The notes below the pieces were generated by a model. The model did not search any database. It was not told where the DNA came from and saw only the letters and a program-made list of their open reading frames with translations. The position numbers and the translations under genes were made by a program. From Adineta vaga (Eukaryota; Animalia; Rotifera): DNA of 64,000 nt. The stretch is from the NCBI GenBank assembly GCA_021613535.1, contig CP075492.1, forward strand, positions 2,852,001 to 2,916,000, given 5' to 3'. This document shows positions 41,266 to 57,814 of this stretch, piece by piece (the first letter of the stretch is position 1; every line of letters begins with the position of its first letter).

Positions 41266-42421
41266 ATGCAAAGCAGTCGAGTCAGTATCACTATTTTAAT
41301 ACTCATTATTATCTTTGAACAGGCTTGGTGTCACGCACCGCCAGTGTCCAAAAATGGTAAGTGATCTTTGCGAATTAAGAAATGGTCAAATGCTTGTATT
41401 TTTTTAAGCAATTGCATTTTAATATTTGGTTTAGATTGGCTTTACACTGGGAATATGATCTGTAACCGACTATGTCACACTGCATCTGTATTAACCGACG
41501 GAAAAGTTTTAGTCGCTGGTGGAACCAATGAGACTTCAACCTGGGATAGCGCAGAATTATATGATCCTTCAGTAGGTCGTTGGACAATCATTGGCAATAT
41601 GAGTTATAATCACGCCTTACACACGGCATCTGTACTAAAAAATGGAAAGATACTAGTCGCTGGTGGTGGCACTACTACAGCTGAATTGTATGATCCTAAA
41701 ACTGGCCAGTGGACCTCACTGGTCGTATGAAATAGCAAAGATCTTTACATACAGCATCCGTATTAAATAATGGGAAAGTGTTAGTTGTTGGTGGTCTAGA
41801 CATCGGCAAAAGTGAGAGCTGTATGATCCGATGACAGAACAGTGGACTGAAACTGGAAATTTGAACTATGATCGAAGCTATCATACGGCTACGGTTTTAG
41901 CGGATGGGAGAGTTCTGGTAGTGGGTGGCAATAATAGTAACGCAGAAATATACGATCCATCTACCGGTCGGTGGACTCTCACTGGTAGCTTGAATGAAGC
42001 ACGACTACAACATGCAGCAACTATTTTAAAAAATGGTAAGGTATTGATCATATGTGGTTTCGGTCAAACGGTTGAATATCCGACTACCACCGAGGTTTAT
42101 GATCCATCTACCCATAAATGGACTATAACTAGCGATGGACTGGTAGCAGGACTCTTTCTTGAAGCAGCTTTGTTGCATGATGGCAGAGTGCTGGTCGCAG
42201 GTGGAGAGTTTTTGGATCCTGAACAGATGCTTCATAGTTCTACCAATGCTGCTTACATTTACGATCCAAGTACAAGTAATTGGACTACTATTAGCTGCAT
42301 GCATACTTTTCGATCGCAACATACACTAACTGTATTGAATGACGGCAAAGCTTTAGTAGCCGGAGGAATAGATACGTATGCAACAAATAGTGCTGAATTA
42401 TATGATCCAACAAAAACCTAG
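41266..42421 (+). pseudogene. Secreted Kelch (galactose-oxidase-type) repeat gene, disabled
   Basis: Signal exon 41266-41356, then repeats of [15 protein letters not shown]...AELYDP..G.W. Frameshifts near 41714 and 41815 with a TAG between them. Confidence 0.8.
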
Positions 42422-42470
42422 GGCATGATATTTTACAAAAAAAACTTCTAGATCATGTAATATATATGTA

Positions 42471-42538
42471 TGCATCTTGAGGGTGTGGGTGTTATTGTCG
42501 ATGAGAAACATATCTTCATCCATACCCTCTCCTCACTC
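42471..42538. repeat. Telomere-like hairpin element with a complete left terminus
   Basis: TGCATCTTGAGGGTGTGGGTG...CATCCATACCCTC; the left end is the reverse complement of the right end of the 1192 copy (1 mismatch). Confidence 0.78.
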
Positions 42539-42759
42539 ATATATATGAGTATATGTTATACTTGTGTGCGTATGTTCTCCTCCTACCTTCTTTCTGATCT
42601 AATAAAGTCATCAAATGAATATTTGTCAATCTTATGAGATATTATGTTAAGAATGTAAATTTATAGGAGAAAAAGACTGAGCAAAAATATCAACAACTTA
42701 TATTTGTCATAAAAATCTAAAGTATAGCGCGTTCAATTTATTGGTAGAAGAAAATTTTT

Positions 42760-43681
42760 TCAATTGATTTTTTCGTGTAGTGATTTAAACGGTGGTATCC
42801 AATCAGGCTGAATGAGTTTCCCCGAATATTCGAAAGCGACAGATTTATCATCGTTTGGAATTAAATTTGGATTAATAGATCCATTGTTATGTAGATCAGC
42901 CTTGCGAATAACTTGTCTTATTTCAGTTAGAATATTTAATTCACGTAAATTCTTAAATTGATCATGTGAATTGAAAGCAATGGCTGGTGTAATGAATTGT
43001 CGAGCTTTACGTGAACTATTTGGATGTAGACCAACGATGAAAAAAGCACGTCCACCAATACTAAAACCTGTTTATCCACAAAGATGTTTGTCGATTAATA
43101 AAATCGATAAGATCATGCCATAATAATTCTGTTGTCTCTTTACTCGTTAATATATCATAAAAACCGAAATTAAACGCTTTTCGTCGAAAAATGATTTTTG
43201 CATTCAAACAGGGAAATTTTGTACTCAATATATACTGCCTAAATAGTTCTTTCATAATGGATTCTTCGTCAGAAGATATTGTCTTAGGTTCATTGCAATC
43301 TGGTACAACTCGATGTATCGAATTTGTCTTGAGGAAATAACCAAATTCTTCTGTTTTTAATCCATCACGAACAATTTTACCAATCCAACATTTACGATTT
43401 AAATATTGCTTGTGTTGATCTGATTTAAGATGCACTTCATGAAATATTCGAGTAACATCTCTACCTGCTAATTGCTTGAATATCTCAAGACCACCAGAAT
43501 GATTCTTCATCAATGCAAGACAATATACATCATCATCTATAATAATCCATCCATCATTTTTATGTTGTTCTACTTCGATGAGTGTGATCGTGCGATGAAA
43601 GAAACCAAGTCCAAGTATAAAACGAGACAGAAATCGTCGAAAAAGAGATAGAAACGATACCGTGAATACCAATAAAGGCAT
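42760..43681 (-). pseudogene. Cytochrome b5 domain fused to a YqcI/YcgG-family (GntA/DcsA-like) heme protein; frame break and apparent deletion near 43068
   Basis: b5 part: WIIIDDDVY...HSGG...AGRDVTRIFHEVH. YqcI/YcgG part: FRQYILSTKFPCLNAK...FGFY, then in another frame FSIGGRAFFIVGLHPNSSRKARQF..PAIAFNSHDQF...GSINP...EYSG...W.PPF. Confidence 0.78.
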
Positions 43682-44335
43682 CTTTTTTCGTGGCGAATCT
43701 AAATAACATACATGAATTGGTTGAGCTTGAAAAAATCTAAAAAAACATTTTATATAATGCACAAATTTCGTTTTATTTAGCGAATCTCATGTTTCGATGA
43801 GAATCTATTGAAAAAACGAAATCCTTTCAATTTTTTTTCTGTACTAAGAATGGGAGCTTAAGGTATGCAAATACTCATTGTAATCAATTCTTATCATACT
43901 TGTTAAGAGATAGCTCTAATCTTCTCTTTCTAAAATGTTTATCGAACTAAATGAAAGAACTTTTTTTCGGAGTAGCAATTAGATTCATATGGATTTATTC
44001 TATAAATAAAATAAAAAAAGTTTTTGAAGTTATTTCGCAATATAGATGTTTATTATTTCCTAAATGAGACATTCTGTTTTAAATGTTTCTTTTCTCGTTC
44101 TCTCTTAATTGTTTTTATTAGGGATTGAAGAAATAAAAGGCACTCAGCGGCTCTTTCATTCTTTCATGTTTCTGTATGTTATATTTTGTTTTTCATATGG
44201 TTGAGCATCGAAAGAAAGAAAATAAGAACGAGAAAAAGAGAGTACGAGATACATAATACAATTGAGTCCATACAATCAAAAACTTCAATAAAATGCTTGG
44301 TGTTGTTGTGGATGTATATTTATTTAAAACTCAAA

Positions 44336-45814
44336 TTACACGTACAAACTAATATAATCATCAATGTCAGTTGATTCAAATCCTGGTTGTGATTGCTCAA
44401 GTATCTTCTGCACTCTTTGTCCGTCAAATCTTCCACGAAGATGCTGCTCAAATTTAGCCATAAGTAGTGGTTTTCCTTCTTCACGACGTTTTCTATGTCC
44501 AATTGGATAATTTACTTCGACTTCATCTAGTTCTGTGCCATCGTTGAGAGTAATTCTGAGTGCATTACCAATATAGCGCTTATTGGGATCATGATATTCT
44601 CGTGTGAAACGAGTATCTTCCACACAGGTAATTTTCGTACGCATATCATCGATTCGTGGATCGGAAGCAATGGCATCTGTGTAGTCGTCGGTGGTCAAGC
44701 GGCCGTAGATGAGCGGTATGGCTGCGATGTATTGAATGCAATGATCACGATCAGCAAAGTTGTAGAGTGGACCAGATTTATCAATGATACGCATTGCAGC
44801 TTCTTGGGTACGAATACGAACGGATTTAATATCTTCAGGAACATTTACTCCTTTATCTTTAAGCAAGTTATGACAGATCATGGCAGCTTCAGCAACAGTT
44901 TGTGCATGAAACTCGGCTGGATAAGAGATTTTAAATAGTACATTTTCCATCACATACGATCCAAATTCTCGTTGAAGCTTAAATTCTTGTCCTCGAAAAT
45001 GCACGTCATAGAAACCCCAAGTATTAGCAGTCAAAGCAGATGGTATACCACTTTCACCTTTTTGAACCAATAATGCCAAATTTACAGCACGCATGCAGGC
45101 ATCACCAGCTGCCCAGGATTTTCGTGACATAGTGTTAGGTGCATGTCGGTACGTGCGAAGACTTTGCCCATCGATCCATGCATGTGAAATAGCATCTATT
45201 GTTTGTGATTCAGTCAAACCTAGAAGTTTAGATACGACTGCGGTCGTAGCTACTTTTACCAATACGACATGATCTAAGCCTACTCGATTAAATGAATTTT
45301 CCAAAGCAAGTACACCTTGGATTTCATGAGCCTTGATCATCGCTTCAAGAATATCCTGAACCTTGAATACTTTTGCACCTTTGGGTTTATCTATGGCACT
45401 GGATGAAGATGAACAGGAATACTTAGCAGTTTGAGTTAAATAATCAGTCACTGCCAATATACCTCCAAGATTATCGCTTGGATGTCCCCATTCAGCTGCA
45501 AGCCAACAGTCATTGTAATCCAACCATCGAATCTGCGTACCAATACTAAATGCTGCTCTAACAGGATCTAGAACATGATTTGTACCCAGAACTCGTGCTC
45601 CATTAGGAATCGTAGCTCCAGGTACGACTGGACCGATTAATCGAGTACATTGTGGATGTTTGAGTGCTTCTAAGCCACATCCAAGTGTGTCGAGAAAGCA
45701 TAATCTCGCAGTATCAAAAGCGAGCGAAGATGTAATAGTATAGTTGTGTACATAAGATGCAATGTCTCGAAGTATCTTATCGACGATTGGGCGCACATTC
45801 TGTATTTTATTCAT
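44336..45814 (-). CDS. prpD: 2-methylcitrate dehydratase, intronless, 492 aa
   Basis: DTLGCGLEAL, RWLDYNDCWLAAEWGHPSDNLG, LRTYRHAPNTMSRKSWAAGDA, FKISYPAEFHAQT, ADRDHCIQY, YPIGH. Confidence 0.96.
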   Translation of the reverse strand: MNKIQNVRPIVDKILRDIASYVHNYTITSSLAFDTARLCFLDTLGCGLEALKHPQCTRLIGPVVPGATIPNGARVLGTNHVLDPVRAAFSIGTQIRWLDYNDCWLAAEWGHPSDNLGGILAVTDYLTQTAKYSCSSSSSAIDKPKGAKVFKVQDILEAMIKAHEIQGVLALENSFNRVGLDHVVLVKVATTAVVSKLLGLTESQTIDAISHAWIDGQSLRTYRHAPNTMSRKSWAAGDACMRAVNLALLVQKGESGIPSALTANTWGFYDVHFRGQEFKLQREFGSYVMENVLFKISYPAEFHAQTVAEAAMICHNLLKDKGVNVPEDIKSVRIRTQEAAMRIIDKSGPLYNFADRDHCIQYIAAIPLIYGRLTTDDYTDAIASDPRIDDMRTKITCVEDTRFTREYHDPNKRYIGNALRITLNDGTELDEVEVNYPIGHRKRREEGKPLLMAKFEQHLRGRFDGQRVQKILEQSQPGFESTDIDDYISLYV

Positions 45815-45974
45815 AGTATATCTAAAAGGTATGCAATTTATATTTATTCAAATTATTCAAACATTACGTAACAATAAACCATCCAGTTATTATTGTTTAT
45901 TTTTATCATTTTTTTACAATAGAAAGTTCAACGTTTTTGTTCTTGAGTTTACTGCACATTCCTTCTGACTAAGT

Positions 45975-47474
45975 TCATTTTTTGAATTGATCAGCTTCTG
46001 TAGATTCAGAAAACGCAGTTGTGCTTCCTTCTCCTCCTAAATTTTACTGCTAAAAGTGACTTAATATTTAGTCTTTAACGTTATTTTACCTGTTATAGCC
46101 ATGTTCACCAAATCGAAATATCCAGTTCCAACTTCTCTTTGATGTCGAATTGCTGTATAACCATGCTTTTCAGCTTCGAATTCTGCCTGTTGCAACTCTG
46201 AATAGGCAGTCATTCCACGATCCTTGTAATTCCGTGCAAGTTCATACATCGCATAGTTCAATGAATGAAATCCGGCAAGTGCAATCAATTGAAGTTTATA
46301 ACCCATTGCTCCGAGTTCCACGTGAAATCTTGCAATTGCTTCTGGGCTCAAATTTGCTTGCCAATTGAACGAAGGAGAACAATTGTATGTCAACAATTTT
46401 TCAGGGAACTCCTTTTGTATTGCCTCTGCGAATTTCTTCGCTTGTTCTAAATTTGGTGTTGATGTTTCCCACCAAAGTAGATCTGCAAATGGTGCTGAGT
46501 TGAGACTTCTTTTGATGCAATGTTTAAGACCAGTTCCACTTTTTAGTCGAAAAAATCCTTCGGAAGTTCGACCAGCTGTCATATCAATGAATTCTCTATC
46601 TCGTTCATCGATATCTGAAGTCAATAGTTTCGCTGATTCGGCATCTGTTCGACTGACAATTATGGTTGGTACGCCACAAACATCTGCTGCCAAACGAGCA
46701 GCATGTAAATTTCGTAGATGAGTACTACTTGCGATCAAAACCTGAAATTGTTTTTGTTTTTTTTTGAACGATGAAATGCTTATTTTTCTTACCTTTCCAC
46801 CTAAATGACCACATTTCTTCTCCGATGCTAATTGATCCTCAAAATGAATTCCAGCCGCTCCAGCTTCAATAAAAGCTTTCGTGATTTCAAAACAATTCAA
46901 TGGGCCACCGAATCCAGCTTCAGCATCGGCAACAATTGGAACAAACCAATCACGTTTTCTTCCACCTTCAGATTGTTCAATTTGTGAAGCACGCTCTAGG
47001 GCTTTGTTGATTCGACGAACCATTTCTGGTCCAGAATTTGATGGATATAAACTTTGATCTGGATACATTGATCCAGCTGTATTTCCATCTGCTGCAACTT
47101 GCCAACCTAAACATACATTCAATATTTTTCTTGAATAGAAAAAAACGAAGAGATTTACCTGACATATGAATGGCGCGTAAACCAGCACGAACCATTTGCA
47201 TTGCTTGATTTCCTGTGACAGCCCCTAGTGCTTGAATATATGGTTCCGTATGTAACAAGTTCCATAATTTGTTCGCACCGAGTGTCTAAAAAGTGAGTCA
47301 CTTTTTCTACCATTAAATTGAACAAGATATCTTCAAATTACTTACCGCTAAAGTGTATTCAATTTGGATGGTACTGCGCAATCGATGTACTACATCAGGT
47401 GCATAAATCCTTTGAATTCCATTCCAGCGACCTTTGGGTGCAGTTCGCACCAGTTCATAGAAAACTTTATTCAT
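45975..47474 (-). CDS. aceA: Short bacterial-type isocitrate lyase family enzyme, possibly acting as a methylisocitrate lyase; exons 47474-47346, 47285-47159, 47106-46793, 46741-46090, 46036-45975
   Basis: [19 protein letters not shown]..., [83 protein letters not shown]. All four introns are GT-AG and keep the frame. Confidence 0.95.
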
Positions 47475-49798: not shown

Positions 49799-50911
49799 TT
49801 AAAATATCGAATAATTAGAAAGATAAAAACTATAATTTGAATAAAATTCAAAAAGATTTTGATAAAACCATTTTGAAGACATATCTTGTTTAAAAACTTG
49901 AATATAATTAATGAAATTTTGTTTATCTGAAGAGGAAAGATTCTTTGAGAGAAAACATTGAAATTCTTCATTGAAATTTCCTTTGAGAATTTGACAAAAA
50001 GATTTTCGAAAGATTTGTTCCATAAGAAATCGTTTTTTCTTCCATAATTGTTTAACATTATGAACAATAAATTGTTTTGTATGAAATAATGTTTGAGAAT
50101 AGGGTGCTGGTTGATAATTTTTTGGATATGATCGTAATTTCCAATATCTTGGTAATTTATCAATTCCATTGAATGGTTTTGCAAATTGTTCATATAACCA
50201 TAAGTATCTTTGCTCAGGATTATTAATTGTTAATCGAATAAATCGATTCAAAGTATCGGAAAGACCAAAACCAGTTATATCAATTAAAATTCGTGATGAA
50301 ACATCATAAAAAAGTGTATTTGTTGTATATTCATTAACATAAATCGGAATATCTTTTCGTAATTGAAATGGATAACTTTCAAATGTATTATTGAATTCTT
50401 TAGGACCTAAAATTAAATGACCAGTTGAGAAAAAATAACATTGACCGAAAAGATTTTTAAGAATTTGATTTTGACATAAAATTTTCATTTGAGATTTTTT
50501 ACAAAAATATTCAGCATCAATATCGTTTGGTTTTAAATTAAGAATTAAATCTCGAATAGCTCCACCATGAATAAACATTTCACAATTTAACGAAGAAAAT
50601 ATTGAAAATAGATTTCCAAATGTAAGTTTATTTAAACCAGGAGCTTGTTCATCTTCAATAATATGTTGAAATAAATTTGAAAATGTTTTCGATTGATAAT
50701 ATTTTGTTTGATTATAAAATTCTTTTTTATCCTTTCCTTTTCGTTTAGAATTAAAATATTCTTGAGAAACTTCTCGAAATTGTTCTAAATCTCGTTTATC
50801 TCTTAATAAAAATTCATCGGAATTTTCATGGCGAAATTTCAGTTTTAATCGATAACAATCAATCAATTGGTTGATTAATAAAAGGAATAAAATCAATCGT
50901 TTTTCTTTCAT
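49799..50911 (-). CDS. Predicted secreted protein with a class II nucleotidyltransferase (PcnB/CCA-like) head domain
   Basis: Signal peptide MKEKRLILFLLLINQLIDC; MFIHGGAIRDLILNLKPNDID (motif A); EYTTNTLFYD (similar to DFTINALYYD); IDITGFGLSD. Confidence 0.75.
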   Translation of the reverse strand: MKEKRLILFLLLINQLIDCYRLKLKFRHENSDEFLLRDKRDLEQFREVSQEYFNSKRKGKDKKEFYNQTKYYQSKTFSNLFQHIIEDEQAPGLNKLTFGNLFSIFSSLNCEMFIHGGAIRDLILNLKPNDIDAEYFCKKSQMKILCQNQILKNLFGQCYFFSTGHLILGPKEFNNTFESYPFQLRKDIPIYVNEYTTNTLFYDVSSRILIDITGFGLSDTLNRFIRLTINNPEQRYLWLYEQFAKPFNGIDKLPRYWKLRSYPKNYQPAPYSQTLFHTKQFIVHNVKQLWKKKRFLMEQIFRKSFCQILKGNFNEEFQCFLSKNLSSSDKQNFINYIQVFKQDMSSKWFYQNLFEFYSNYSFYLSNYSIF

Positions 50912-52192: not shown

Positions 52193-54079
52193 TTGAAAAT
52201 TAATAAAAAGAAGAATAACTTTAGAAACTGAATATCAAAGATGTTATAGTTGTTTTTTTTTATTATAATTATCAAAAAAAAAGATAAATTAAGAGATTTT
52301 TCTATGACACTTAACAATTTCAGAAGAAATTAATCATGCTTAAATACATCTGCTCATTAAAATAATGTCATTTAGAAATACGAATGACGTTAAACTTTTA
52401 GTTTTTTCGTCAAATTGTTCATTCAAATGAATTTCTTAGGGCCAATTTGAGAAAATAAATTGAGAACATTAACAAATGCTTTTAACCTTTATGTTAGATT
52501 TTGAAATAAGCATAAAAAATATTCCAGATCTTTATAATAAGAAAGTACTTTAAAAAAATATAGAGTTTATTTAATTATGTTAATATTACTTTTATGAACA
52601 TTTCTCCAACTTGTTGTTATCTAATTAATCTTTCATAATGATACAAAACGAACATCATTATGTTATTTACAAATGAGTTAAATGTCAAATTATCATTTTA
52701 AAGAAAGAACTGAATTCATAATTCTTTGTCGATATAATTCTAGAACTTGATCTCGCCAATTAAATCGAAATTTCGAGGTTTTACATGAAAATTTGCTCAT
52801 AGTAACATTTCAATTAGAGTATAGTTTATCTACAAAGTTTCAAAATTTCTGATTGAAACATTCCCAAGATATCGTGTTTACTGTATACAGCATTATTCGT
52901 AAAAGGTCGCGATGTCTCAGTTAAATCTCAACTTGCGCACGAACCATCTTAGAACATATCACTCCTAGACATCTCTATCTAATCATTATATCCAAGATTG
53001 AAAAGCTTTTTAACATCTTGAGTAGTTTCATCGTAGGTTAAATGAATTCTAATAAAAGAAAACTTATGAAATTTACTGTTTACTATCGATAATGATCATG
53101 AAAATCCATCTATATATTCTGTAATATTCCTAACGAAAAATAGTTGATATTCTTTATATAAATATATAACAAGTAAGTAAATTCTCAAAAGATCATATCT
53201 ATAGAGTTGTTTTTTCCACTGTTGACTTATTATTTTATATTCGCTCGGCAAATCAAATAGATTGAAATAGTAGAGAGGAGAAGATGAACTTCCTACATCG
53301 TTTTATCTTAGAGGTGTATGCCATAGAATATACATATCTATTTTTTCATTATCATACCCTCAGAAGATATCTATTTATCAGTATAAAGTATTTTTAGTTC
53401 TTGTTCTGTATGTTTTAACATATTTTCTATTTATATGGCTTTTGTGAAAACGAGATTATTCTACGTCATGTGTTTACATGAGCAAAAACTGAAATAATCA
53501 TTTTCGATGTTTTCTAACACGTCATAATACATTATTTCTTATTTTATGATCAATAAATTATGTAAAGAATTTAATCTCATTGTAAATATTCGTCTATTTA
53601 GAATAAAATCTACGTCATACATTTGAATTTCTCAAATAATCTTTGAATAAGAAACAAGGGACAGAGTGACATTCAAGACATTATTATGTGAAATATTCAG
53701 AAATAAATTCATAGAATCCTTTTCTTTACAAAATATGTCGTAGTTCTATAGTTTTCTTAATTTGATGTTCTTTTTCTCTTTCACACGAAAATATTCGGTA
53801 CTTTCCACATCTTTGCCATCATAGGCATTATTCATAGAAATTTTCTTGAAATATATAATCATTCCTGTATGCTTTTTCTTTCCATATTGTCACATCAGAT
53901 ATTCATTCAAAATTCTTGTCTCTTTCTTTTAATTCTCTAAGAAGAAAAAAAAATGTAATAAGAAACATATTAATGAAACATTTTCGATATGCGAGAAATT
54001 TCTTTTCAAGATATTTGACTTCGAATAACATTTTGTAGTTTTATCCTTAAAGTTCAAATTGATACAATCAATCGAGATC

Positions 54080-57000
54080 ATGTCTCATACACAACAACAA
54101 GTACAAGAAAATGTCAATCAAATTAATAATATGATCAGACAAGAACGTACAAACATTAATCTTTGGCCGATTACTGATATGTCTCGACATGATCAAGATA
54201 TTCATATAATTTCATTAGAAAATGTTTTACAACGTTTTCATTCGAATCAACGAACTGGTTTATCAACAAATTTTGTTACCGATGCAAGATTACATTATGG
54301 CAATAATCAATTAACACCACCTCAATTACCAAGTTATTTTTGGTTATTATTTAAACAATTATTCATGGGTTTTAATTCAATTCTTTGGGTTGGTAGTGTT
54401 CTTGCTATAATTGCTTATCAACCACTTGGAGGTTCAAATCCATCGATTACAAATTTAAGTCTTGGTATTGTACTTTTTTCGGTGATTATATGCAATGCTT
54501 TTTTGAATGTATATCAAACGTTAAAATCGATTAAAATTATCGCATCATTTTCGAAATTATTACCAAAAGCTGCTACGGTTCGTCGTGAGGGTGTAGAACA
54601 ACAGATTCCTGTTAATGATCTCGTTCCTGGAGATATTATTATTATACGAATGGGTGATATAATACCAGCTGATTGTCGATTTTTAACTTGTGAAGGATTA
54701 AAAGTAAATTTTATTTTTATTCTTTCTATTTTTTGAATATATATATATATATTTCTAGATAAGTTCAGCAGAATTAACTGGAGAAACCAAATCTATCAAA
54801 ATGACAATTGAATGTACTAGTCAAATTTTGATGGAAACAACTAATATCGGATTTTATTCTTCATCAGTTGAAGAAGGAATTGGTGAAGCAATAGTTATTG
54901 CAACAGGAGACAATACAATTTTAGGCACAATGTCTGGCACAACACAAGAAAATTCCAATAATCAAATTACAAATCTACATCGAGAAGTGAATCGTTTTGT
55001 ATTGTTTGTGATTGTTGCTGATATCATTAGTATTATCATTCTTTGGATTACTTGGGGAGGATGGTTACAATATAATCATCCAACATTTATTACTCTTACT
55101 GGAAATATTATCAATTCAATTGGTATGATTGTAAGTTTTTTACCTGTAGGTTTACCATCGGCTATAACACTTGGTAAATTACATTTGAATATTTTAATAA
55201 AGAATATTTTAATTATTTCTTTTCAGCACTTGTAATAGTAGCTAAACGAATGAGTCAACAAAAAATATTAGGAAAAAGTTTACAGATTGTGGAAAGTTTT
55301 AATTCAATTTCAGTAATAACGACAGATAAAACAGGTACATTGACTAAGAATAAATTAGTTGTAACTGACGTTCTTTGGGATATTGATGAAGAATGTAAAG
55401 TATTTGAAAATAACGAAGAAAAACCATTGAAAAAACAAAAAAAACATCGATTATCTATTATATCTCGAGAAATCTCTCATCATTCTCCATCAAAAGTCTT
55501 TCCTGCTATAGAAAAACCATCAATTAGTCAAAATAATTCCGAATCTCACAATCAATTTCGAATTGATGTATTCGATGATTTACTTCTCGGTGCGGCATTA
55601 TGTAATAATGCTAAAATACAATATGTACAAAGTTCACAAAATAATCGTAATAAAATGAGAAGAGATTCAGAATTACATGTTATTGGTGATCCTGTTGATG
55701 TTGCTCTTTATAATCTGTGTGTTTATCAATGTTTTATGTATATTGATGAAATACGTTGTTTAAATCCACGTTTAAAAACTTTGCCATTCAATTCAACGAA
55801 TAAATTTATGATTACAGCTAATCGAATTGAATTAAAGCGTAGAAAAATTGTTTTAATTACAATGAAAGGTGCACCGGAAATTATCATTCAACGTTGTTCG
55901 TCATATAAGACGAATGATGGTCAAATTTTATTATTAACAAATGAAATGAAAGAGAAATTAATCAATCGACAAGAAATGTTATGTAGGAAAAGTTATTTTA
56001 TAGATCAAAAGTATTCAATTGAAATCTGTTGTTTTTGTTTTTCAAGGTAAAAAAGGTTATCGTATAGTTGGTATGTGTCAACAAAAGTTTACGGAAATTC
56101 GTTATGATCAATCAATGGAACAATATGAAGAAAGAAAACGTTCGCAAATAATTCCTAATGATGATTTATATGGATTTCCAAAAGATAATTATTGTTTCAT
56201 GGGATTTTTCACTTTATTTGATTCTCTTCGATTTGATGTACCAGATTCTATTCATAAAATTCGTCATGCAAATATTCGTGTTGCAATGATAACTGGTGAT
56301 CATCCAACAACAGCAATAGCTATTGGTGAACAAGTTAATATCTTTTCAGAAGAAATTTCTAAACGAAATGGTATTGATACATTTCAAATAGAAGAACATG
56401 AAAATGATCAATCAATCTTTCGATTATATCGTAATGGATTATTCTTAAATGAACATGAAATGAGTCAATTAACATCATTTCATTTAACGAATAAAGCAAT
56501 AGGACTTACTGGAAATCAATTTACGGAATTGAAACCGATTTTTGATGAAGAAAAAGAAAAAGAAAAGATTCCTTATGCAATTCTAGTTTGTATCTTTTTA
56601 TTTTTCTTGTTTGATATTTAGAAATATATTTAATTGATTAGGTAACTGGTTCTCAAATCGATTTTCTCGATGATTTTATGTGGAATTGGATTTTATCTCA
56701 TCAAGAATTAATCTTTGCTCGAACATCACCAGAACAGAAATTACGAATTATCATGGAATTTCAACGACGTGGAGAAATTGTTGCAGCAATTGGTGATGGA
56801 ACTAATGATGCTTCATCATTGAAATATGCTGATCTTGGTATTGCAATGCAATCGGGAACAAATGTTTCGAAAGAAGCGAGTGATATGATTTTACTTGATG
56901 ATCAATTTTCATCGATTATTTCAGCGATTGAAACAGGTCGTCTTTTAGCAGATAATTTAAGAAAAGTTGTCATGTTTTTATTACCTGCCGGTTAGAGATT

Positions 57001-57814
57001 TCTTTTTTTCTTATAGAATAACAAAGAAATAAGATTCGATATATTTATTATAGGTTCTTGGTCAGAATTTTGGCCGATTATGTTAAATATGTGGTTAGGA
57101 ATTCCTTTATCACTAACAGCATTTTTAGCAACAATTCTTTGTGTTTTAAATGGTAAAGATAGATTTATTTAGAATATATCGAATATTTTATTTATAGATG
57201 TTGTGATATCATTGGCATTAGTTTGGGAAAAACCTGAAACAGAAATTTTATCTCGTCCTCCATTAAATCGAAATAAAAATCATTTATTAAATTGGAAATT
57301 ACTTCTTCATGCTTATTTATTTATTGGTAATATAGAATGTTTTACAGCATTTTTTTGTTATTTTTATTATTGGATTGATCATGGTATATCATTTTATTCA
57401 TTTCTATTTACTTTTGAATCATTTGGTATTAATCCTCGTACAATTTATGATCAAAATCAATTAAATCAAATGATTAATATATCACAATCAATTTATTATT
57501 GTTCATTATGTTTATTTCAAATATTTAATTTTTTTTCAATACGAACAAGATATGCATCAATTATTCAACATAATCCTTTTTGGGGTAAAAATAAAAATTT
57601 ATATGGATTAATAGCAATTCTTATTTCAATTAGTATTCAATTAATTTTTACACAAATCCTTTGGTTTAATCAAATATTTGATACAGCTCCTGTACCAATC
57701 AAATATGTAATGCCAACAATTGGATTTGGTTTCATTTGGTTATTTATTGATGAATTTAGAAAATTTTATATTCGAAAATATCCTCATAGTCTTATTTCGA
57801 AAATTGCTTGGTAA
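54080..57814 (+). CDS. P-type cation ATPase, type IIC-like (Na/K- or H/K-like), multi-exon
   Basis: YGNNQLTPP, LVPGDII, IPADCR, LTGE, DKTGTLT, MKGAPE, MITGDHP, FARTSPEQKL, GDGTND, MILLDDQF. Confidence 0.92.

Follow-up and report, generated by a model that had tools for sequence, protein, structure and literature searches.

A cytochrome b5–YqcI/YcgG gene for a putative two-heme enzyme, probably acquired in fused form, in the rotifer Adineta vaga

The locus and its gene

The window analysed here is a 64,000-nucleotide stretch (C3:2852001-2916000) of the six-contig, AT-rich 100.8-Mb assembly of Adineta vaga, and the relatives described below fit a bdelloid source. Its minus strand carries, at positions 42760..43681, a gene in which a cytochrome b5 domain is joined to a YqcI/YcgG domain and which we call b5-YcgG. 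The ATG lies at 43681 and the stop codon at 42760-42762, and as assembled the gene is 170 nt shorter than the form derived from public reads. The protein begins with a hydrophobic, basic leader (residues 1-29, 43595..43681, MPLLVFTVSFLSLFRRFLSRFILGLGFF), which is followed by the cytochrome b5 domain (residues 36-103, 43373..43576) with the heme ligands His61 (HSGG, codon 43499-43501) and His84 (EVH, codon 43430-43432). The YqcI/YcgG domain comes in two blocks on the same strand. The N-terminal block (43070..43243) covers positions 1-52 of the Pfam profile PF08892, continues onward to ...QTSLWIN and holds Cys158 in an FPC motif (KFPCLNAK, codon 43208-43210), while the C-terminal block (42763..43068, PF08892 positions 112-209) reads GFSIGGRAFFIVGLHPNSSRKARQF...FNSHDQF...GSINPNL...YSGK...WIPPF. 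At the joint between the blocks (43068..43069) 170 nt are absent from the assembly, that is 57 codons less one retained base. The elements listed in an earlier, sequence-only reading of this DNA, namely a hydrophobic N-terminus, a b5 domain with both histidines, the FPC motif and the C-terminal YqcI/YcgG block, are all there.

That reading had also placed the gene just downstream of prpD, and indeed prpD (44336-45814, minus strand; MmgE_PrpD_N with E 4e-93 and MmgE_PrpD_C with E 3e-57) lies 655 bp upstream on the same strand. Beside the Adineta ricciae copy of b5-YcgG prpD is absent, NHL/EGF genes being the neighbours there, and no synteny was found. The mRNA 3′ end of the window gene falls within 42703..42742 (minus strand), between an AATAAA signal at 42742-42737 and the end of an RNA-type contig at 42703. 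Elsewhere in the window, exons of a P-type cation ATPase (Cation_ATPase_N, E1-E2_ATPase, Cation_ATPase and Cation_ATPase_C) occupy 54059-57811 on the plus strand, and an ORF with a poly(A)-polymerase/nucleotidyltransferase head domain occupies 49802-50911 on the minus strand.

The b5-YcgG gene is flanked by eukaryotic genes and its GC content is 33%, compared with 31% for the window. Contamination as the source of the gene was ruled out by the chromosome-scale contig, the eukaryotic flanking genes, the host-like GC content and the poly(A) signal and tail. According to genome-wide searches with PF08892 and with our A2 profile, this locus is the only clear PF08892 member in the 100.8-Mb genome. 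A third, looser genome-wide search returned one extra weak PF08892 match, below the cut-off and on another chromosome. This match is a 139-aa ORF (G000:C1:7819831-7820079; L125:1315-1734, minus strand) that covers PF08892 positions 77-153 with a sub-cut-off score of 22.8 bits (E 0.003) and is very distant from the b5-YcgG fusion.

Domain architecture and predicted fold

The broken gene was searched as two separate pieces: piece 1 (window:43064-43681:-) of 206 aa and piece 2 (window:42763-43071:-) of 103 aa, the latter one base out of frame relative to the former. Piece 1 matches the Cyt-b5 profile PF00173 over residues 36-103 with an E-value of 3.8e-11 and 43.3 bits, above the cut-off of 23.7, which confirms the b5 assignment made earlier. 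For the YqcI_YcgG profile the outcome is divided, since piece 2 (positions 112-209, E 6.4e-16) is above the cut-off of 27 with 59.3 bits, while piece 1, whose match to positions 1-52 includes the FPC motif, stays below it with 20.1 bits. Intact relatives match PF08892 over positions 1-211.

The axial b5 ligands H61 and H84 are kept in 18/18 fusions, and together with G64, G73 and F80 they are invariant in an alignment of eight fusions from three kinds of organism. Likewise, the FPC cysteine (Cys158 in the window protein) occurs in each of the 61 aligned sequences and lines up with the YPC motif of AglA, in which Cys44 serves as the heme thiolate ligand according to the first crystal structures of the family (PMC12866846). 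In AglA the heme propionates are bound by the basic residues Arg166, Lys196 and Arg200 (PMC12866846). The arginine of the motif SSRKAR aligns with Arg166, and the profile alignment stopped short of Lys196 and Arg200; the arginine columns 280, 283 and 315 are invariant or nearly so.

The structural comparison was made with an AlphaFold model of the intact relative P0001, not of the window protein (pLDDT 90.5, pTM 0.83). In a Foldseek search with this model the top five PDB matches were all AglA (target TM-score 0.66-0.71, E 5e-8 to 2e-7), the best being 9ubb with a target-normalised TM-score of 0.71 and an E-value of 5e-8, and the beta-sheet/helix “sandwich” fold of the AglA type is found in the model. 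Its b5 part matches rat and bovine b5 with a target TM-score of about 0.8, and further matches include Ncb5or and flavocytochrome b2. It was the fold search that settled the relationship with AglA, which the A2 profile had reached at only E 0.007; a PDB sequence search with the YcgG domain of P0001 alone gave only spurious ETV6 matches, and an ESM Atlas feature search gave no usable match. The order of leader, cytochrome b5 and YqcI/YcgG (GntA/DcsA/AglA-type) heme enzyme proposed from the sequence therefore holds on both domain matches and ligand residues, and the predicted structure, which resembles AglA crystal structures as well as b5 structures, agrees with it.

P0001 also passes the NCBIfam equivalog model for GntA, the pre-guanitoxin N-hydroxylase (NF041366), with 219 bits against a cut-off of 145; the two pieces of the broken window gene reach 35.6 and 112.1 bits on the same model. 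Because NF041366 also names Flavobacteriaceae proteins outside any shown guanitoxin cluster, the specific substrate was not taken from it. No guanitoxin genes were found near the b5-YcgG gene.

The leader is conserved among the bdelloid relatives and forms a helix in the P0001 model (residues 2-25). Its best Kyte-Doolittle mean over 19 residues is 1.41, and it is therefore not a clear transmembrane segment.

A fused subfamily and its origin

When 1.84 billion representatives were searched exhaustively and without a profile, 879 matches came back, and the best 150 were checked with Pfam. Among these best 150 of 879, b5 and YcgG domains occur together in P0033, P0035, P0037, P0104, P0149 and a bdelloid cluster. 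A b5-type motif is also present in P0153. The named carriers of the fusion are the rotifers Didymodactylos carnosus (CAF1542241.1 and CAF1404463.1) and Adineta ricciae (P0193) and the fungus Metarhizium acridum (J3458_020651, P0194). These proteins have 339-368 aa; identity is 47-64% for the bdelloid ones and about 28% for the fungal one, and all are named automatically as “Cytochrome b5 heme-binding domain-containing protein” or “hypothetical protein”. The hydrophobic leader of the bdelloid proteins is missing from the fungal and bacterial ones. The Metarhizium fusion encodes 339 aa in a single exon, and P0035 lies on a 191-kb eukaryotic contig with a gene for a 60S acidic ribosomal protein. 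The fusion is also found in many rotifer-like metagenome contigs and in contigs of bacterial type. P0104 has TetR, MFS, thiolase and sigma-70 genes as neighbours, and P0149 is flanked by a histidine kinase gene on one side and an arginase/agmatinase-family gene on the other, the genes overlapping or being 19 nt apart; both neighbourhoods are of the bacterial type.

The relatives, too, have b5 and hydroxylase joined in one protein, and the architecture is not peculiar to this genome. We conclude that b5-YcgG belongs to a rare fused subfamily, present in databases with automatic names, rather than being an invention of this genome alone. No description of it was found in the literature: a full-text search for YcgG with cytochrome b5 returned only an unrelated E. 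coli promoter paper, and a paper on horizontally transferred biosynthesis genes in bdelloids makes no mention of YcgG, b5 or a hydroxylase. The view of the enzyme as foreign stands, the nearest unfused relatives of the YcgG part being bacterial proteins, uncharacterised and about 40% identical.

Subfamily signatures were read from alignment A4, which holds 61 sequences (18 fusions and 43 unfused relatives). None of the 18 fusions has lost either b5 histidine or the FPC cysteine. Directly ahead of the TT(F/Y)VA strand, 18/18 fusions have a three-residue insertion with an invariant tryptophan (Q-x-x-x-W), which is absent from 41 of the 43 unfused relatives; the other two have different insertions, neither with a tryptophan. 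Conversely, the cysteine of a C-terminal CPF motif (the W-x-C-P-F column), kept in 36/43 unfused relatives, is gone in 17/18 fusions, where it is mostly replaced by proline. The family's “FPC/CPF motif” owes its name to this cysteine, which may be linked to the way in which stand-alone enzymes interact with their redox partner. The window gene bears all marks of the subfamily, with its b5 domain, the tryptophan of ...RQTSLWIN and WIPPF, which has no cysteine. In a maximum-likelihood tree of the YcgG domain with 54 rows, one branch (SH-aLRT 81) parts all unfused rows from all fusions, and the backbone support is weak to modest. Two more rows fall on the fusion side: P0086, where the insertion is present too, and P0085, which has a long branch. 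The YcgG domain of Metarhizium is sister to that of the bacterial-type P0149 (49% identity, SH-aLRT 97).

The shared insertion and the loss of the CPF cysteine suggest one old fused subfamily, spread by gene transfer and not fused in this animal. On the strength of the 54-row tree and the insertion, we think it quite probable that the gene was acquired already fused, contrary to the idea that the enzyme was joined to its electron donor in the rotifer; if so, the leader, which the bacterial and fungal members lack, would be a rotifer-side addition. An origin of the fusion within the rotifer lineage, from a transferred bacterial YcgG gene and a host cytochrome b5 exon that supplied a membrane anchor, has some appeal in that the leader is specific to bdelloids and that eukaryotes commonly have b5 fused to redox enzymes. 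Moreover, the rotifer b5 domain scores alike in BLAST against the host b5 L092 (36.6 bits) and against the b5 domains of other fusions (35-39 bits); judged by such sequence comparison, the b5 domain alone is uninformative about its own origin. Such a local fusion is nevertheless unlikely, as fused genes stand in bacterial-type contexts (P0104, P0149) and in Metarhizium, the fusions have the tryptophan insertion and the cysteine loss in common and fall on one side of one branch, and no close b5 paralogue was found in the genome.

The gap in the assembly

As assembled, the gene has no counterpart of PF08892 profile positions 53-111 and at 43068|43069 its reading frame is displaced by one base. 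Intact relatives with the middle segment and both domains were found (326-370 aa), and in the alignment with them the window protein is without exactly 57 codons. The missing stretch spans ...W-x-N | N-H-M-F-T-T-Y-V-A ... D-P-N-F | G-F-S-I-G-G.... The assembly still has one base of the first of these codons, so 170 nt are expected to be missing.

We compared this prediction with public reads over 41800-46000, using contigs from four runs, each of a different study; DNA was read in two of them and apparently RNA in the other two. In 4/4 runs one contig crosses 43068|43069, each time with exactly 170 extra letters, and this contig accounts for all depth in both flanking bins (54.9, about 175, 6.71 and 7.02 in the four runs). 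By their exact length and by comparison with the relatives, the 170 letters appear to encode the missing YcgG segment. The deleted form is found among none of the listed contigs of the four runs. Heterozygous sites near the gene show up as paired contigs in the same runs, so that a second, deleted allele would probably have been visible; contigs can drop a minor allele, which leaves some probability of a heterozygous or clone-specific deletion. Metagenome contigs were scanned by exact pattern for an allele in which about 170 nt separate the two flanks, and none was found. Both DNA runs also differ from the assembly, at full depth, in single bases inside the gene at 43538, 43630 and 43638, and therefore the assembly near the gap carries consensus errors or clone-specific differences. 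Further full-depth single-base differences between both DNA runs and the assembly occur at sites between 43258 and 45749.

An intron was rejected as the cause of the break, because sequence is absent and not added, and because the RNA-type contigs follow the genome collinearly once the 170 letters are set aside. Of the two apparently RNA runs, X11 covers 42749-43629 of the gene and X17 covers 42749-43414. Depth in these runs is zero over the intergenic stretch 43633-44196 and coverage resumes over prpD. The end of one RNA-type contig, at 42703, consists of 16 consecutive T and lies 34 nt past the AATAAA (42742-42737, minus strand); these T are a poly(A) tail read from the other strand. The coverage pattern fits an intronless, polyadenylated b5-YcgG mRNA, the RNA type of the runs being a guess.

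As all four runs carry the 170 letters and none the deleted form, the gap and frameshift most likely arose in the assembly, or else belong to the assembled clone as a private variant, and the gene in the organism appears to be intact, intronless, transcribed and polyadenylated. The missing middle segment and the frame break near 43068 that had been noted from the sequence are real in the assembly, but the reads contradict them for the organism. A true pseudogene, in which a 170-bp deletion removed the YcgG core and shifted the frame so that the locus would be a decaying remnant of a transfer, was also considered. The deletion and the frameshift are present in the assembly, and since the deleted segment holds 13 family-invariant columns, the assembled form cannot be active. 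We nonetheless regard decay as quite improbable: runs from four studies show only the 170-letter form at full local depth, the 309 remaining codons hold no other stop or frameshift and keep the conserved family residues that were checked, and the locus is transcribed and polyadenylated. Gene-loss calls from this assembly consequently need a read check, because an apparent pseudogene here is probably an assembly defect.

A second length difference was seen at the kelch-repeat ORFs at 41368-42421 (plus strand), where one contig in both DNA runs skips 343 bases (42042 to 42386). Contigs that match the assembly are also present, along with many paired single-base variants, which suggests that the repeat-unit length of this kelch-repeat gene differs between alleles.

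Proposed function and comparison with known systems

Taking the evidence as a whole, we consider it reasonably probable that the locus holds a single-copy, horizontally acquired and intronless gene for a two-heme b5-YcgG enzyme, with a gap that is most likely an assembly defect or private variant, and that the gene was probably acquired in fused form. The protein is likely a b5-fed thiolate-heme N-hydroxylase of a guanidino substrate, a putative function in which the substrate is deduced from the family only. According to the mechanism we propose, host NAD(P)H-dependent reductases (b5 reductase or P450 reductase) would reduce the b5 heme, which would pass electrons within the chain to the Cys-ligated heme. 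The latter would activate O2 and N-hydroxylate a guanidino (arginine-like) substrate, and in relatives the product would probably feed a neighbouring enzyme of NRPS or arginase type. A role of the b5 heme as a built-in relay is argued by the conservation of both b5 histidines across three kinds of organism. The potential of classical b5 is too high for delivery of the first electron to a thiolate heme; the b5 domain might supply the second electron only, or might need a lower potential than usual.

The characterised heme-dependent guanidine N-hydroxylases of the same Pfam family are AglA, DcsA, GntA, ChmN, AmbT and Mhr24. These characterised members N-hydroxylate guanidino groups of arginine derivatives and require an external ferredoxin/reductase (PMC12866846). 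The likeness to AglA consists in the alignment of FPC with Cys44 and of SSRKAR with Arg166 and in the predicted fold of P0001, at an identity of only about 16%, and the likeness to GntA in the NCBIfam match of the same intact relative. The enzymes characterised so far are bacterial, comprise about 230-270 aa and stand alone, with ferredoxin/reductase as separate proteins. In contrast to them, the window protein has a leader, a b5 domain and the three-residue tryptophan insertion and is without the CPF cysteine, and its gene lies in an animal genome, outside any recognisable cluster.

Engineered fusion to a reductase raises the activity and turnover of a family enzyme (PMC12866846). The AglA-PDR/VanB chimera of that study likewise combines a YqcI/YcgG enzyme and a redox partner in one chain, but it is artificial and carries a C-terminal FMN/Fe-S reductase (PMC12866846), whereas b5-YcgG is natural, has its b5 heme domain at the N-terminus and would still need an upstream reductase. 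In the eukaryotic b5 fusions (front-end fatty-acid desaturases, sulfite oxidase, nitrate reductase, flavocytochrome b2 and Ncb5or) the in-chain b5 hands electrons on to a catalytic metal or flavin centre or receives them from it. None of these has a thiolate-heme YqcI/YcgG partner, and b5-YcgG occurs in bacteria as well.

Could the b5-like domain instead be a regulatory heme- or ligand-binding module or a heme-delivery module, or the chemistry be something other than guanidine N-hydroxylation? The redox potential of b5, the fact that only six members of the family have been characterised (PMC12866846), and the roughly 40% identity of the bdelloid proteins to their nearest, uncharacterised unfused bacterial relatives leave some room for this, but both histidines in all 18 fusions, their invariance along with the glycines and the phenylalanine in the eight-sequence alignment, the fold match to true b5 proteins and the arginase-family neighbour of P0149, which echoes the DcsA/DcsB pair, make it very doubtful.

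As non-P450 thiolate-heme N-hydroxylases that serve antibiotic and toxin biosynthesis, the YqcI/YcgG enzymes have been recognised as a class only recently. How they receive electrons in nature is poorly known, and the authors of a 2025 study had to build a reductase fusion. A natural b5-fused subfamily with signatures of its own would be a ready test system for heme reduction in this class.

Gene neighbourhoods

In three rotifer-type contigs (L002:682-4467, L003:9322-10839 and L005:1991-3440) the b5-YcgG gene adjoins an NRPS of the Pls/PosA type with AMP-binding and PP-binding domains, terminal hexapeptide repeats and a partial match to TIGR02353. Loci of Pls-type NRPS number at least 14 in the A. 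vaga genome, and with about 14-20 of them per 100 Mb chance adjacency in three contigs is very unlikely. Beside the gene in this window there is no NRPS or arginase neighbour, and the window as a whole contains no Pls-type NRPS. These observations suggest that b5-YcgG and the Pls-type NRPS are a conserved gene pair that was lost in this window. P0033 adjoins an adenylation domain, and the Metarhizium gene is divergently adjacent to an A-T-C NRPS of 1136 aa (L122:5475-11020, JAGRQK010000030.1).

The neighbourhoods point to arginine-type, NRPS-linked chemistry. We put forward, tentatively, that a partly self-sufficient b5-fused subfamily has moved between bacteria, fungi and bdelloids, and that in rotifers it could act with a horizontally acquired Pls/PosA-type NRPS partner to make a peptide or polymer defence metabolite with N-hydroxyguanidine (hydroxyarginine-type) groups. 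With the gene present and expressed in an animal, the foreign NRPS repertoire of bdelloids, which is reportedly used against fungal pathogens, gains a tailoring enzyme.

The DcsA/DcsB pair makes and cleaves N-hydroxyarginine in D-cycloserine biosynthesis. In the bacterial-type contig that encodes P0149 (L088:181-4516), the histidine kinase gene, b5-YcgG and the arginase/agmatinase-family gene are packed on one strand, a layout reminiscent of the DcsA/DcsB pair with the b5 fusion added.
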